Shown here: in pieces, positions 45,891 through 57,241 of the stretch | How positions within the stretch are numbered: the first letter of the stretch is position 1 | Layout: every line of letters begins with the position of its first letter | From: Chlorokybus atmophyticus | Taxonomy: Eukaryota; Plantae; Mesostigma and Chlorokybus algae | Length of the DNA stretch: 64,000 nt | Direction of reading: 5' to 3' | NCBI GenBank assembly: GCA_009103225.1 | Contig: RHPI01001507.1 | Location: 202,249-266,248, forward strand | The notes under the pieces: generated by a model | What the model was told of the DNA's origin: nothing | Databases searched by the model: none | What the model saw: only the letters and a program-made list of their open reading frames with translations | Made by a program: the position numbers and the translations under genes

Positions 45891-47118
45891 CACGCGTGCA
45901 GGAGGGAGTTAGTGAAAGAGTGTGTGGCTTATCCTCTAGGCTTATGGTCATGAAGTGGTTGTGAAGTATCATTCGATAGAGTTGGCGCCATCATCTGCTA
46001 GTATGGGGAGGGCTCAACTTGGCCCTTTCTTGCTGCTGCTAGATTGAAATGAAGTCTCCGACGGCGTAGAGCAGAATAGAGCCAGCATACTGCATGTTGG
46101 CGTCGCCATCATCATTGTGTAGTTTGTAGCGATTTAGGAAAGCAGAGTCTGTTGTTTCCTGTATTGTTGTCGTAGGTAGCCGAGGAGATGCCTTCCTCGC
46201 TCTGTAGTGTATTGACTTGTGTCGCCAAGTGTAACAGCTGTCATTGCCAGAAGGCTACTGCTGATGGGGATTGCGTGGCTTAAAAAGAAGTGGAAGGCGT
46301 GTCTTGACGGTTGTAGATACGAGCATATTGTTAAAAGGATGTCAATAATGGCCATATGGCCATTCCTGACATTCTGTTACCGTATGCGTTACTATGCTGT
46401 TAGTGCAATATCAGTATCGTAATTGTGTAGGTGGGTCCAATAAGCTGCTGACACATGCAAGTTGCTGTGGTTTTCAAGTTGGTTGGCGACTGTCTCCTAT
46501 TGGCTGCCTTATGCTGCACTTGCACTTGCATAGCACATAGGGCTGCACTTGGGTTGTGGGCGAGCATCTGACGAGTTTTTCGTGCTGCGTTGCGCACGCT
46601 ACTAGGGGTGCCACACCGGTTTCCAATGCAAGTGACTCAGTAACGTGTGAAGTGCGTTAGTGTCTTGGGCGCCCAATGGCGAAGGGCTTGCCAACCACCG
46701 AGGCGGAGGCGGCGCGAGCAATGAAGTGAAGGACGGCGTGTGGAGTGCGTCAAGGCGGGGTGGGAAGAGGAGGCGTAGGCAAGCATTCACATTTGGGCTG
46801 ATGACTGATGACGCCATTACAATCTCGTAAAGTAGTGGTGGTCCATCGCCGGTGGGGATACATCTGATGCGTTGTGTAATGGGGCGGGCGCATACAGCAA
46901 CACCCAACATGGTGCGCAAGGACGTCTTCATTGATGCGTGATGCGGCTGTTTGATTCGGGTTTCATGGCCATTTAACCTGGAGTCTCGTGGACGAAAGCT
47001 GGATTTGATGGCGCCGGAGCCTGAATAACGCCCATTTGTGTCTTTGCGTTGTAATGTTTTTGAATTTGCGTTGTTGTGTTAGCGTTATGGCTTTGACACA
47101 GGGACCTTGTGACCGTCT

Positions 47119-47309
<191 letters not shown>

Positions 47310-47522
47310 ATATGCTACTGACTATGATGGTGCAGCGAGTGCCTGGTATGAGGGGGCAGCTGCACGAATGGCAAAGCACTAGAAACGCGGCCACCATGGC
47401 ACATGTCATGACACGCAGTTTATCATTTTGTACACATTTACACATTAGAGTCCCCTTCCGCGTTACTACACACATCTTAGCAGCAAGAAGGCAGAAAACA
47501 AAACAACCGCTGAACCAAACAA

Positions 47523-47652
47523 CACTGCGGGATACTTAAGTGCAAAGGTCTGGGCGGGGCAAACCCCGCACTGACCTTCAGCTTTACAACCGTTTAACCA
47601 CTGCGGGATACTTAAGTGCAAAGGTCTGGGTGGGGCAAACCCCACACTGACC
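47523..47652. repeat. Two 54-bp direct repeats (47523-47576, 47599-47652), each with a GC-rich stem-loop
   Basis: CACTGCGGGATACTTAAGTGCAAAGGTCTGGG(C/T)GGGGCAAACCCC(G/A)CACTGACC; the copies differ only at two paired stem positions. Confidence 0.9.
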
Positions 47653-47811: not shown

Positions 47812-50651
47812 TCATCGCTGCTGCGCAAGCCATTTGGATGCCAGCCACTTCTCGCCTTTCACCACAGCCCTCCCGCCTGCAGTGAGGTCATAACAACCAC
47901 AAGATATGCTCAGCACAAGAGCCGCGGGCGTCCTCCCAACGAGTGAGCATGTGTAGATAACGACGCTAGTGTGGACAACATCAGCAGTGAGACAGCCATT
48001 TTGAGGACAGCCACTTCTCGCCTCTAACAACAGGCCGACCCCCTGTGCGTTGGTGCATGCGACACAGTCAGCCATAATTCTCGCAGAAATATTGAGGCCT
48101 GCCTTCACTGCTGCATCCGGAGTTTGAATCGAATGCATAGTCTTTACTCACAACCGCATGCATTCAACTTATGCGGCACAGCATGCCTAACTATACTCGC
48201 AAGCTTGAAAACTGATCCAGAAGCTGAGTGCAGCGAATAGCACCCTTCTTGACAAGGCGACACGTGCAAGTGCACAACAATCATACATCGTGCCCTCACC
48301 ATGCAAACTGCGGGAGTCTTCATTGCCATCTGGCATGCGGCTCCAAAACATCAAGGCTTTGCCCTGCAAGCACAAGAACATGCAAGAGCTGAGACTGTGC
48401 ACAATGCTTAGCATTTATTAAAGATTGATGTGAGCAAACTAGAACAATTAACTCCTGGGGATCATGGATTGGCAGTGCTTAATAGAACAATGGAATGTGA
48501 GGCATGCCTTGGCTGGCTTGACAGCAATGCCGGTCTCCTTGTCCGAGTGTAATGGAATGCCTTTAGGAAAGAAAGTCTCACCACCTTCTTCAACATCATT
48601 CAAAAAGCTGTCGATGGCAAGCTGCATTAGCCCACTTTGAAGCCAAAGCGCATATGCAGAACAGTGACTCTTGGAGTACAAACGAAGAAAGACAAACAAG
48701 AGAGATATGCTGCATCAATGCCAGAACACCAGCAGGCCGCACAGGACAAGCTACAGTATGACACTACACGGACAATCACCGGTTGTAGTGCAGGTAAGGC
48801 AACATAGGGCAGCACAGCAATACATGCCCAACACTTACAGCAGCATGGTGCAAGCGCGCTGATCAACATCGCCAACGTCATTGTCATAATGCGGCTTGAA
48901 CTCCTGCCCTGGATAGTATCGTATAACCTGCAGGAAGGCAAGTAACCCTGAGGTCAACAATCCGGAGTGGCCACCCTGAGCAACAGTGCAACTGCGTCCC
49001 TTCAGTACCTGCAGCTTATCAGACTTGTCAATGCTAAGGTTGAACCCTAAAGCCCGGCTTGTTGTTGCAATCTTATCCTCAACGACCCGGACAACACTGT
49101 CGCAGTAGTGTGCGGCTGTCATAAACATGCCCCAGCTTGTTCGATTCTGCAAAGCACATAACAACATGAGCAACAATCTAGCGGCATGCTCCACTGTCTT
49201 AATGGACAACAAACTACTCAAGCTGTGTGGACGCAATGCTCCACCTTGCTAGGCCTGTGGCCGGAGACAAGCGACGGCTTCAAAAACGGGGTGGCCAGGT
49301 TGACCAAATGTTGGCACTCCTCATCCGTCAAGAAATGATGGATGACGACGATGTGGGGATGCATGCTGACTGTCTCTGCAATGCCGGATGTGCTGCAAAT
49401 GGGCATGGGCACGCCTTGGACATGTGGGCCAGAATTCGAGCTGCCGCTGGTCGCAGGCGCCAGTGCCAAACCCTCTGACCCTCCAGTAAATAGCGCATGT
49501 ACAGGACCTGTCGAGCACACTTATAAGCAAGAGCCCACATCTGCTGCAGTATGGTGTTGAAGGACAAGCTACACAGCAACCAGCCGTACCTTCTGAATGG
49601 AGTTGCAACTCAACCATCAGTGAGTCATTGCGCACGAAGCCCTCCCGCAGCAACTCTGTTCGTGTGATGACGCAAGGACTGGTGTACGTGTGCCGTACAC
49701 TAGTGAACTTATGCGAGGCACCTGTGCATCACTATATGTTCGGCCTGAAGCAACACAGGATGCAAATGTGCAGATTGTCCGTGCACACTGCAACATACCG
49801 ATCAAGAAGGAGTGGGTAGGGCTAACATCATTATTTATGGATACCAGAAACCTGCCGCATTCCACAGTCAGCACAGCAACAGACACAAATAAGCAGAAAA
49901 ATAAAAACCCATCGGCAAAAACAAAGCTAGATCACCTCTTATGTAGTGTAACACCAGGGGGGAGGTCGCGAGCATTGGCCAGTTGCAAGGCAACAGATAT
50001 TTGATCCGCATTCTTATCACTAAAGACAAGATACATGCGCCTGCTCAACAAACGACAATGACAACATCATCATACTGCTGCTTGATGTTGCAGTCAACAA
50101 TTTTTGACTGAATGTCACAGCCGTATGGTACCGATAAGCGAACGGTTGTGGTTGAGCTTAATAACCTGAGTGTTCTGCTTACCACTGAACACCGTCCAGC
50201 TTGAAAACGTCAGAACACACCACATGCGAGACATCCAAAGCCGCCAGCTCAGACATTGCGTACATCAGCCGCCATTGCACAACTGCAGAAGCGCACAGAG
50301 CGTAAGCGCCAGAGACTCGATGAGCGCACTGTAACATGCAACCTCAATGGAGCCAGGCCAAAACAAGGGCAGTCTCCAATCCCTTCATTCTAATGTACGA
50401 CATATGCATGACACTAGATGCGCAAGTCGCAGTCACGGGCAGAAAGTAGCCTTACCTGTTGCTGCAGCATCGCTTTGCAGTCCAACGCTGCTTGGTCCAG
50501 CCATGTCTGCTGCTGGGGATGTACTGACCTGGACTTTGGCAAAACTTAGCTCTCCTTTCGGTGCCAGATCGGACTTGCGCCAAGCGGTCTCTTCACTGGA
50601 ACTGTGATAGACTGGATCTACAGTAGCAGGTTTTGAGCACATCTCTCCCAT
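47812..50651 (-). CDS. MATH (TRAF-like) domain fused to a prolyl 4-hydroxylase-type 2OG-Fe(II) dioxygenase; about 10 coding exons, with further exon-like blocks upstream to ~51460
   Basis: Frame-continuous splicing: VVQWRL...CSDVFKLDGVQWRMYL...QISVALQL...RFLVSINN...SHKF...ELLREGFVRNDSLMVELQL (MATH), then HHFLTDEECQHLV, RTSWGMF, LQVIRYYPGQEFKPHYD, FLNDVEEGGETFFP, GKALMFW, SLHGG..V.KGEKWLASKW (P4H). Confidence 0.85.
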
Positions 50652-53600: not shown

Positions 53601-54167
53601 AAGTGATAAGCAATGCAATTTACAAGTAGTTTAGTTATGAATAACTTTTTCAGTGTGCCGGACTGCGCTACCCATCTTACTTTAACACTGTAATTCAACC
53701 TTGAATTCATTAAAACTGATTACCAGTACCAATATCGCCACATAGCTCAATTTCATGGCTATCGCAAATATACAGACGTTACCGCAACATAATGAGCATA
53801 GCCCATGCGGAGCTTTATATGGCGAAAATGGGCAAATAAAGGCACATGTGCCCTATTGCACATGTCGGTGTACATTGAGACCAGGGCGACATACTTTATC
53901 GCCTATAATATAGCAATTGACCTTATGGCAAGGTCACCTAGCCATAAGGTGAGTTAAACATCCAAGCATTAGGCATATTACATGACATAGTACAGATTCA
54001 ATCGCTCACCGCATGTTGTAGCGCCACCTAGCACGATGAGAACACTCTAGTTCGGAGTTAAGCTTCATATGAAGCCCAAGGAGGCTTTTAGCCCGTGCAA
54101 ACCAACGCTGTATTGCACTTGAGCCCTTGCCTGCTTGAGCACCTGCCCATCAATAAGTTGCTGTGCA

Positions 54168-54170
<3 letters not shown>

Positions 54171-54251
<81 letters not shown>

Positions 54252-54668
54252 NNNNNNNNNNNNNNNNNNNNNNNNNNNNNNNNNNNNNNNNNNNNNNNNN
54301 NNNNNNNNNNNNNNNNNNNNNNNNNNNNNNNNNNNNNNNNNNNNNNNNNNNNNNNNNNNNNNNNNNNNNNNNNNNNNNNNNNNNNNNNNNNNNNNNNNNN
54401 NNNNNNNNNNNNNNNNNNNNNNNNNNNNNNNNNNNNNNNNNNNNNNNNNNNNNNNNNNNNNNNNNNNNNNNNNNNNNNNNNNNNNNNNNNNNNNNNNNNN
54501 NNNNNNNNNNNNNNNNNNNNNNNNNNNNNNNNNNNNNNNNNNNNNNNNNNNNNNNNNNNNNNNNNNNNNNNNNNNNNNNNNNNNNNNNNNNNNNNNNNNN
54601 NNNNNNNNNNNNNNNNNNNNNNNNNNNNNNNNNNNNNNNNNNNNNNNNNNNNNNNNNNNNNNNNNNNN

Positions 54669-54698
<30 letters not shown>
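54171..54698. repeat. (GA)n microsatellite flanking an assembly gap (N 54252-54668)
   Basis: Direct reading of the sequence. Confidence 0.95.
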
Positions 54699-54703
<5 letters not shown>

Positions 54704-57241
54704 CACTGGTATTGTCCAGCAACATCACCCTTGAGCTTGTCCACGGTAGTTGAGTGGGGGGAGGCGATCGTCTACAGCGCTTTTGTTGTCACAACATCAT
54801 GGTATGGTGGAGAAGCCGAGGCTTTGCATTTGGATGTAGTTGAAGGGGGAAAGACACAGTGCAAGCCAGACGAGCATCCAGACGCATAGCGGTAGTAAAT
54901 GTGTCTACCATCACGCAGCGGCCTCCGTCCTGTAGATGAGGCTTTTTATTACTAATTGAGTGCTCCACTCTCTCTAGTTGTTTTTCTTGTTGTTGTTGAT
55001 GGTGATGTGTTGACAAGCCCGCCTTTGTCACCAGCATCATCTTCATCGTTGGTGTTGGTGTGATTCGCGCCTTCGTGCCAGAAGCAAACAGGAGGTAGTG
55101 ACCATCATATTTATTGCGTTGCACATGCACTTTTGTGTTTGCTTGTACTTGTAGTACAAGCTCAATAAACAGGTAACCTCCGCCACCTGGTAAAAGAAGC
55201 CCCCGTGTGTGTCTTTTTGCAACCATGCAATGGTGGCATTCAGCGTGGAGGTGTGCATGCGCGCGTGTTTGTGTGTCTATGCTTACTGATTAGCAGTACG
55301 CGTGTAACACTTACAAGTGTGTACACAGACGTATATGCATACACGCACGCGCGCATGTACTCACTTCATCGCACATTGCTACCTCGGCGTGAGAGAAAGC
55401 GTGCGTGCGTGCGCGCGTGCGCGCAGTTGTTGTGAATTGTTAGCTCCGACTTGATGAACACCAAACATTTATTCGTTTTATTCACGGCGCTTACAACTAC
55501 AGGGTCCATGCCTGAGCCACACCCCCACTCCTGCACAGTAAACAATGCGCCTGCCTTTACAAGAGCCGGCTCTACCCACTACCATATTATTCGTTTATGA
55601 GGCATGCACAATGCGTGTCACGCGTGTGAAAGCAATCCGGAAGAGCCCATGAATTGTACTGACAAACCACTGCGTTTGTTGTGCTCTGGCCAATGTCCTC
55701 CACTTCTTCCGCACACAAACTCACTGCCTGCATGTAATGACTGGGCAGCCCGGGAAGGTGTTGTGGTTTTGTAAGGTGAACTTGTTGATCATACCGTCAA
55801 CTGCACATCACAACACAGTAGTGAGACGCCAAACAGTAGTGAGACGCCATCATCGTCACATTACACACGCATGCACACACGCATGTACAAGCAAGCACAC
55901 AACACGGTAGCAAACTTTGGCTTGCTGTACATGCACCCAACATGTACCTTGTGCGTTGTCGTTGATGTTGTGCAGCGTCTGCCTGAACATCACCACCACC
56001 TCTTGTTGGCACTGTTGATAATAGTACTGAATACTATTCAGCAATCCCGCCGTCGCCTCTCTCGCGAGTGCATTCAGCCTCTCACTCCCAGTATCACTCA
56101 AGGCTTGTCCCACAGTGATCTCGCCATAGTAACTCTTGATGAAAGCGGCGTTGGCAGCGTTGCCGCCGGCGAAAGCGTTGTACAACTTGGTGTAGGGTCT
56201 CAAGTTGATAGGGAAGCGGCAAGGGTGGGTGTTGGCACTGTTAATGGCCCAGGTGAGGGGGGGACACGCCTGCGAGCCGAGAAAACGACCGTGCGGGAAA
56301 GTGGTCGTCCTGCGGGTGAGTGGGTGGGTGGGTGGATAAGTGTGTGTGTGTGCGTGTGGTCAGTAACATGTGACTAAGCTTACTTTTTGGGGCATTGTGG
56401 AGGTGCAGCACTAACAACGTTGATGCTGATGGAGGAAGAGGTGGACTGCCCCGCTACTGTGATTGTGAGGGCGATCTTCCTTGCTCCGGCACTGTTGTAC
56501 TGGCAAAGCCCCTCCACAGTAGACTGCACAAATGCATAATAGTTGGGGTTCACGCACGCGCACGCACACGCACACGCACACGCACACGCACACTCACACT
56601 CATACTTACCACAGAGTCTGGTCCGCACTCCAGGCTGCGTATGATACTCTCCTCTCCGATGCACGTCGCATAGTTGGTGACGCTGTCCCTTATGGCAATG
56701 CTATCCCCCACAACCAGCGTGCTGCTCCCCGTGTTGGCATTCACCGCATACGCCTCATCGATCGTCACCACAACAGGGTTGAGAGTGAGTGTTGCTGTGA
56801 GTGTCTCCGCGGGGCAATCCATTACATTGACGGACCCTTCCGATATCCTCACACGAATGGTGTTTATCTTTCCAGCTTTGAGCAAAGGGTAAGCGTATGG
56901 GCTGAAGACGTGACCCGAGCCCGAGAAGATATCGTCCGTGCCGTCGTTGTCAATGTCGTATGAGATTGTGCGGGTTTGACCCTCACAACCACGACTCGTG
57001 CCGTAGGTTGCAGCCAACAAGGCTGTCCCGCACACGTCAGCGGGAGCTACCTGCGCCGAGGCTCTGCATGCATAGCATTGTGGTGTGGTTACACATTGGC
57101 TGCTTGGTGTGGGTGGGTGGGTGGGTGCGTGCGTGCGTGTGTGCGTTGTGTCACTCACTCGCTGTCGGCGCCAAGGGTGGTGCTTGCGCTCAAGCCAAAT
57201 GCCCACTTGCCGTACTGAATGACACACACAAGAACACATCA

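Follow-up and report, generated by a model that had tools for sequence, protein, structure and literature searches.

A MATH-prolyl 4-hydroxylase fusion protein without a secretory signal, conserved in Chlorokybus atmophyticus and two other streptophyte algae

The known role of prolyl 4-hydroxylases (P4Hs) in the green lineage is a luminal one, the preparation of cell wall glycoproteins; those of Chlamydomonas and plants carry an N-terminal signal anchor and meet these substrates in the lumen of the endoplasmic reticulum or Golgi apparatus. The collagen P4H of animals is also luminal, requires protein disulfide isomerase (PDI) as its beta subunit, and has a helical accessory domain resembling tetratricopeptide repeats (TPRs). 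To our knowledge, no cytosol-facing protein P4H has been described from plants or their algal relatives, and literature searches retrieved none. Non-secretory, O2-dependent P4Hs that act on regulatory proteins are represented by PhyA of Dictyostelium and Toxoplasma, which modifies Skp1, and by the animal PHD/EGLN enzymes, which modify HIF (PMC3515798, PMC11192375). Here we analyze a gene of Chlorokybus atmophyticus, located on the minus strand at positions 50651 to 47812 of a 64,000-nucleotide (nt) window (the whole stretch of DNA analyzed; contig RHPI01001507.1, positions 202,249 to 266,248), which encodes a MATH domain fused to a complete P4H domain and has no recognizable secretory signal.

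From its N terminus, the predicted protein consists of the heptapeptide MGEMCSK, ~60 disordered residues, the MATH domain, a flexible linker of ~40 residues, and the complete P4H domain. Several lines of evidence indicate that the MATH and P4H parts belong to one gene and form a true fusion, as had been proposed in an earlier note written from the letters of this DNA alone. First, eleven exons, with ends anchored on the window sequence, keep a single frame throughout (433 codons with terminal exon 11a and 434 with 11b), separated by introns of 77 to 257 nt. Second, exon 6 (49507-49245; 263 nt) encodes both the Gly/Ser/Ala/Pro linker (~40 residues) and the first strand and helix of the P4H, where it matches Chlamydomonas P4H, so that the linker is physically joined to the hydroxylase. 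Third, the intron between the last MATH exon and exon 6 is 82 nt long, and its retention would shift the frame. Fourth, the same order (MG..CS start, MATH, P4H) recurs in the gene models of three species, produced by at least two annotation groups, with those of Mesostigma and Chara agreeing with the Chlorokybus structure. Intron boundaries are GT-AG throughout except in intron 9, for which GC is the donor with the best support; of the earlier claim of consecutive GT-AG exons in one frame, the frame therefore stands, and the uniform GT donors probably do not.

Used as the sole query in a whole-library HMMER search, exon 6 retrieved the publicly annotated, unnamed 429-amino-acid (aa) protein Chrsp86S07997 of the early-diverging streptophyte C. 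atmophyticus (jgi Chlat1 8601; here P0001), with 100% identity over residues 197 to 283. This is the offset predicted by the exon model, and the public model thus has the same N-terminal offset. Full-length analyses rest on P0001, and the window exons were searched singly; since these encode 17 to 87 residues each, single-exon Pfam and PDB searches gave weak hints, e.g., MATH_2 with exon 5 (expect value [E], 0.039) and 2OG-FeII_Oxy_3 with exon 8 (E, 0.043).

The MATH domain spans about residues 65 to 193 and is encoded by exons 2 to 5 (50282-49590), i.e., exon 2 (50282-50183; 100 nt), exon 3 (50040-49936; 105 nt), exon 4 (49851-49799; 53 nt), and exon 5 (49721-49590; 132 nt), the last of which, alone, matches the C-terminal end of the MATH_2 profile. 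In P0001, Pfam MATH_2 (PF22486) matches residues 82 to 191 with 35.7 bits (cutoff, 32; E, 1.2e-8). The MATH region folded alone by AlphaFold2 from a three-sequence alignment gave a model of moderate confidence (predicted local distance difference test [pLDDT], 64; predicted template modeling score [pTM], 0.55), for which, in keeping with the eight-stranded antiparallel beta-sandwich of solved MATH structures, the best 50 Foldseek matches were all MATH domains of SPOP or USP7 (E from 3e-6), with template modeling (TM) scores by query of 0.51 to 0.68, the highest being 0.68 for USP7. An exhaustive VIA-align search placed TRAF6, USP7, TRAF1, TRAF3, SPOP, and meprin in the top eight (Z, 10.4 to 11.9), and below this MATH set came Siah1 (Z, 8.6) and unrelated folds (Z, ≤6.7). 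Sequence searches of the PDB, run both with the single MATH sequence and with a profile built from all three MATH regions, matched no MATH chain. On the strength of the profile match above the cutoff and of a predicted fold whose top ranks in both structural searches are all MATH, we conclude that the MATH domain first noticed from the letters alone is real. Pfam detects no BTB, USP, RING, or F-box domain in P0001, and MATH and the 2-oxoglutarate (2OG) oxygenase are the only domains in P0001 and in its Mesostigma orthologue. No coiled coil or other trimerization element is predicted adjoining the MATH domain.

The hydroxylase begins in exon 6 and continues through exon 7 (49146-49009; 138 nt), which encodes helix 2 and the subfamily signature NRTS with its peptide-binding Arg and Ser; exon 8 (48927-48839; 89 nt), which encodes the core with the Fe(II) ligands His-x-Asp (HYD, 48891-48883); exon 9 (48607-48508; 100 nt); exon 10 (48363-48300; 64 nt), with the distal Fe(II) ligand His at 48303-48301; and a terminal exon supplying the 2OG-binding Lys. 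Pfam 2OG-FeII_Oxy_3 (PF13640) matches residues 328 to 425 of P0001 with 44.4 bits (cutoff, 27) and the Mesostigma orthologue with 55.9 bits. Against the PDB, phmmer ranks Chlamydomonas P4H-1 (2jig and 3gze; E, 3e-26), the Bacillus anthracis P4H (2e-22), and human C-P4H-II (2e-11). The AlphaFold2 model of the domain, from a 58-sequence alignment, has a pLDDT of >90, and its top 30 Foldseek matches are all P4Hs, with 3gze first (E, 6e-18; TM score by target, 0.77). The columns of H342, D344, H408, and K418 and of R285 and S287 of the RTS motif are invariant or nearly so among the 58 sequences. Sequence conservation thus indicates that the catalytic residues are intact, and the earlier description of an intact P4H agrees with the profile, sequence, and fold matches. 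The HYD, distal His, and GEKW Lys that it listed were all located in the gene, whereas its SLHGG string spans a splice junction. Membership of the HIF-PHD/PhyA branch was considered and rejected: PHD2 appears only from Foldseek rank 39 (to 50), at 16 to 20% identity and an E of ~1e-8, and a PDB sequence search with P0001 returned no EGLN chain.

The N terminus distinguishes these proteins from secretory P4Hs. Exon 1 (50651-50456; 196 nt) starts at 50651 with MGEMCSK (50651-50631), followed by a hydrophilic, predicted-disordered Ser/Pro/Ala segment; such a segment had been described earlier, and residues 1 to 38 have a pLDDT of <50. The maximal 19-residue Kyte-Doolittle mean within the first 70 residues is 0.50 in Chlorokybus, −0.45 in Mesostigma, and 0.54 in Chara, compared with N-terminal anchor hydropathies of 1.65 to 3.64 in ordinary P4Hs of the same alignment. 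The MATH-P4H proteins have no hydrophobic signal or transmembrane anchor. To this extent the earlier note, which had reported neither signal nor anchor, was right (maximum, ≤0.54), but it had overlooked a conserved acylation-like motif at the start. The proteins begin with MGEMCSK (Chlorokybus), MGLMCSR (Mesostigma), and MGLSCSK (Chara), i.e., MG[E/L][M/S]CS[K/R], and this start occurs in exactly 3 of the 131 proteins collected, namely the three MATH-P4H orthologues. The 55 to 250 residues that follow cannot be aligned among the three, and Chara has an insertion of ~190 residues there. Position 3 is Glu in Chlorokybus and Leu in Mesostigma and Chara. All three starts match a dual-acylation pattern of Met-Gly, Ser6, a basic residue at position 7, and a nearby Cys, and a Cys near a myristoylated Gly is the usual partner site for S-acylation. 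N-myristoyltransferase binding is favored by Lys at position 7, where a basic side chain engages the enzyme in a salt bridge (PMC7048800). Conservation of the heptapeptide while the following region is not alignable points to N-myristoylation, S-acylation, and membrane tethering: with myristate probably attached to Gly2 and an S-acyl group to Cys5, the protein would be held at the cytosolic face of a membrane. The earlier placement in the cytosol or nucleus is consequently probably too loose, the conserved MG[E/L]xCS[K/R] making membrane tethering likelier. The conserved heptapeptide also marks 50651, the start that had been proposed, as the true start codon, and an in-frame stop lies 12 codons 5′ of this ATG.

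The two orthologues, retrieved by the same search that returned P0001, are Mesostigma viride Mv09414 (P0005; 408 aa) and Chara braunii GBG60506.1 (P0009; 692 aa), both of which have a weak MATH_2 match followed by P4H. In a maximum likelihood tree of 58 P4H domains, the three orthologues form a clade with 100% support in the Shimodaira-Hasegawa-like approximate likelihood ratio test and a long stem, outside the group of land plant and green algal secretory P4Hs and outside the bacterial groups. The clade has the signature SLVSG..S.NRTS and QEFK.HYDN, which the other P4Hs of the alignment lack. A profile of the trio gives its members 488 to 732 bits, the best score outside the trio being 159 bits, and a MATH profile built from the three proteins matches only those three among the 131 collected. 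These comparisons indicate that the hydroxylase domains of MATH-P4H proteins form an old clade of their own.

Distribution was assessed from the best 120 matches per search, among proteins of 0.55 to 1.75 times the query length, in annotated genomes. No further protein with a Pfam MATH domain was present among the best 120 matches to P0001 in a collection of 5.8 billion clusters. In the ESM Atlas, neither the feature searches (exon 6 and P0001 as queries) nor the fold search yielded a MATH-P4H cluster, the clusters returned being those of ordinary 2OG oxygenases, and a word-index search with the N-terminal 200 residues returned P0001 itself only. The short fragments P0006 to P0013 were considered as subfamily members and rejected as pieces of ordinary P4Hs. 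By sequence, the fusion is known, among the matches listed, only from Mesostigmatophyceae, Chlorokybophyceae, and Charophyceae. Full-text literature searches found nothing relevant on the MATH and P4H domain pair, and the combination, which the earlier note had not recognized from any known protein, is accordingly rare (three algae among the matches listed) and is not described in that literature. MATH-P4H is thus a conserved, publicly annotated, yet undescribed domain architecture, and its sequence features point to non-secretory proline hydroxylation in streptophyte algae.

We propose that the protein is a cytosol-facing, lipid-tethered hydroxylase acting on a MATH-bound partner, a proposal based on sequence and model comparisons to which, as a whole, we assign a probability of about one-half. 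The protein would be made in the cytosol and stay on the cytosolic side, anchored to a membrane surface through myristate on Gly2 and an S-acyl group on Cys5. A partner protein or peptide would bind to the MATH domain and be kept near the hydroxylase by means of the flexible linker. With O2, 2OG, and Fe(II), the P4H domain would then convert a proline of the partner, or of a protein bound to the partner, to 4-hydroxyproline. By analogy, MATH would have the role of the separate peptide-substrate-binding domain in animal collagen P4H, and it may reasonably be taken as a candidate substrate selector. A precedent for a cytoplasmic target is provided by bacterial P4Hs of the same fold, which act on cytoplasmic EF-Tu (PDB 4iw3 and 5v7y).

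Several observations weigh against this proposal or parts of it. The MATH region is poorly conserved: a BLASTP comparison between Chlorokybus and Mesostigma is not significant (E, 5.4), and MATH_2 passes the Pfam cutoff only in Chlorokybus, the matches in Mesostigma (E, 0.0045) and Chara (E, 1e-4) falling short of it. As the orthologous MATH domains are barely alignable and below the cutoff, a conserved binding groove remains putative. Glu at position 3, as in Chlorokybus, is disfavored by classical myristoylation rules, and Gly followed by an acidic residue is a preferred NatA substrate, so that N-acetylation may be favored instead (PMC7048800). Three positions ahead of HxD, where most P4Hs carry Tyr, the hydroxylase of all three orthologues has Phe. 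In the annotated Chara protein, the second half of the hydroxylase is missing, and a CCHC zinc knuckle stands in its place at the end; the gene model spans 142 kb and is probably faulty and chimeric, having picked up a piece of a retroelement gag gene.

The alternative that survives best, which we nevertheless consider doubtful, is that the start is not lipidated and the protein is a soluble hydroxylase of the cytosol or nucleus, in which MATH selects substrates into ubiquitin signaling. It would account for the lack of a hydrophobic anchor and for the Chlorokybus Glu3, which is atypical of N-myristoyltransferase substrates, and the MATH model finds its nearest structural matches in extensively studied members of the family, SPOP and USP7 among them. 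It does not readily explain why the first seven residues are kept across three deeply diverged algae when the region that follows is not alignable. The link to ubiquitin, which the earlier note had raised as possible, found no supporting domain in the protein: with no BTB, USP, RING, or F-box domain by Pfam, and hence no module of the ubiquitin system, it rests solely on the behavior of other MATH proteins.

Somewhat less probable again, and in our view unlikely, is a role of MATH in oligomerization or in TRAF-like docking to the cytoplasmic tails of membrane proteins, with the hydroxylase acting on a nearby proline-rich (polyproline-II) stretch. The MATH domains of TRAF6, TRAF1, TRAF3, and meprin score as high as those of SPOP and USP7, the strong divergence of MATH between orthologues fits a single conserved degron-like ligand poorly, and the peptide-binding Arg and Ser of Chlamydomonas P4H-1 are retained. 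An oligomerizing, TRAF-like MATH is, on the other hand, at odds with the prediction of no coiled coil or trimerization element next to it.

It is improbable that the hydroxylase domain is inactive on proline, as in a pseudo-enzyme, or that it hydroxylates another residue or a small molecule instead. The replacement of Tyr by Phe before HxD in all three proteins, the clade-specific signature, and the long stem branch could be taken in this sense, but the same Phe occurs in 7 of the 55 other P4Hs of the alignment, every Fe(II) and 2OG ligand is conserved, as is the peptide-binding RTS motif, and the nearest matches by both sequence and fold are true P4Hs.

Finally, it is very improbable that the fusion is an artefact of gene modeling, whether from two neighboring genes or from a secretory P4H with an upstream signal-anchor exon: a possible acceptor (ttttcag/g) does lie 11 nt before the ATG and the public model does have one doubtful splice site (intron 9), but separate MATH and P4H genes are rejected because the 82-nt intron, which shifts the frame if retained, leaves no room for a promoter and the order from MG..CS start to P4H is repeated in three species from at least two annotation groups, and a missed signal-anchor exon is rejected because the in-frame stop upstream of the ATG and the conserved heptapeptide mark the true start.

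Two corrections to the published structure are suggested at the 3′ end of the gene. The public model P0001 places the end of exon 9 at 48523, before a GT donor at 48522, and reads ...ETGIA-GKALMF..., without VKPAK. A GC donor at 48507 (48507-48506), 15 nt beyond the public GT donor, adds VKPAK (48522-48508). Chlamydomonas P4H-1 has VKPIK exactly in the alignment gap of P0001, and Mesostigma also has VKP there. Because VKP is conserved in both, the GC-AG version is likelier; intron 9 probably uses the GC donor, which, together with exon 11b, would give a protein of 434 residues.

The last exon is duplicated: two copies share 52 nt with 81% identity, and their flanking sequences are unrelated. 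Candidate 11a (48042-47981; 62 nt) encodes GRPVVRGEKWLSSKWLSHC followed by a stop, with the 2OG-binding Lys at 48016-48014, and candidate 11b (47876-47812; 65 nt) encodes GRAVVKGEKWLASKWLAQQR followed by a stop, with the 2OG-binding Lys at 47850-47848 (GEKW). Both reading frames are open, and each copy is preceded by a CAG acceptor in the correct phase. Exon 11b, which had been taken as the last exon, is indeed intact and is used in the public model, but 11a is a second intact candidate; its G-x-P-V motif includes the canonical Pro, and it is closer to Mesostigma than 11b is. Among the 16 codons common to the two copies, six differ synonymously and three nonsynonymously, and this excess of synonymous differences suggests that both copies have been kept. 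Exons 11a and 11b may therefore be alternative terminal exons.

Downstream of the gene, at 47523 to 47652 of the window, a 54-nt unit occurs twice, 76 nt apart and with 96% identity, each copy containing a GCGGGG...CCCCGC hairpin. The repeats are 160 to 290 nt 3′ of the stop codon, and these two copies are the only ones within the window; they could be an element of the 3′ untranslated region or a terminator, or simply a small repeat. Long (GA)n/(CT)n microsatellites are located at ~47100 to 47310 and ~54100 to 54750, the second flanking a run of N (an assembly gap).

The significance of the locus lies first in providing a cloneable candidate: a P4H with intact catalytic residues and no secretory signal, fused to MATH and probably lipid anchored, that is present across the deepest streptophyte splits. 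If active, it would imply regulatory proline hydroxylation in the ancestors of land plants, and its MATH domain would provide a direct handle on the target. Its patchy spread, with presence in Mesostigma, Chlorokybus, and Chara and nowhere else among the matches listed, could make it a marker of gene loss during plant terrestrialization. The analysis also offers a probable correction of the public gene model at the GC-AG intron and reveals the duplicated terminal exon. A broader idea, which we advance only tentatively, is that the trio represents an ancestral streptophyte signaling enzyme, lipid tethered, cytosol facing, dependent on O2 and 2OG, and targeted by MATH, that would constitute a third independent form of oxygen or metabolite sensing at the protein level beside PHD-HIF and PhyA-Skp1, retained by Mesostigma, Chlorokybus, and Chara and lost towards land plants. 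Land plants use plant cysteine oxidases instead.

The protein shares its MATH fold with SPOP and BPM (MATH-BTB), USP7 and UBP12/13 (MATH-USP), the TRAFs, and the meprins, but the domains that accompany MATH in those proteins (BTB, USP, RING/zinc finger/coiled coil, or astacin protease) are all absent from it. With PhyA and PHD it would share non-secretory prolyl hydroxylation, and PHD2 is a distant fold match (Foldseek ranks 39 to 50), but these enzymes belong to another branch of the superfamily (E, ~1e-8 and 16 to 20% identity, versus 1e-18 for the collagen/plant type), and none of them has MATH. The bacterial P4Hs of Bacillus anthracis and Pseudomonas (PPHD) are near in sequence and fold (E, 2e-22), are cytoplasmic, and hydroxylate EF-Tu according to their PDB entries; unlike the algal proteins, they are prokaryotic and lack both MATH and the acylation motif. 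Many bacterial P4H relatives (P0025, P0029, P0054, P0072, P0076, and others) are fused to Sel1 repeats, a further instance of this hydroxylase domain being combined with a protein-binding module.

With Chlamydomonas P4H-1 and plant P4Hs (2jig and 3gze), MATH-P4H has in common the double-stranded beta-helix, HxD...H, the 2OG Lys, and RTS, with 33 to 35% identity to Chlamydomonas P4H-1 in the structural match and 39 to 40% identity to plant P4H4/P4H2-like proteins. In contrast to these enzymes, it has no hydrophobic segment, has MATH and an acylation-like start, and forms a separate clade. The animal collagen P4H alpha subunit (7zsc) follows the same logic, with a binding module and then the hydroxylase in one chain, and the catalytic domains are homologous (E, 2e-11); the difference lies in the accessory domain, which in the Chlorokybus protein is a MATH beta-sandwich.

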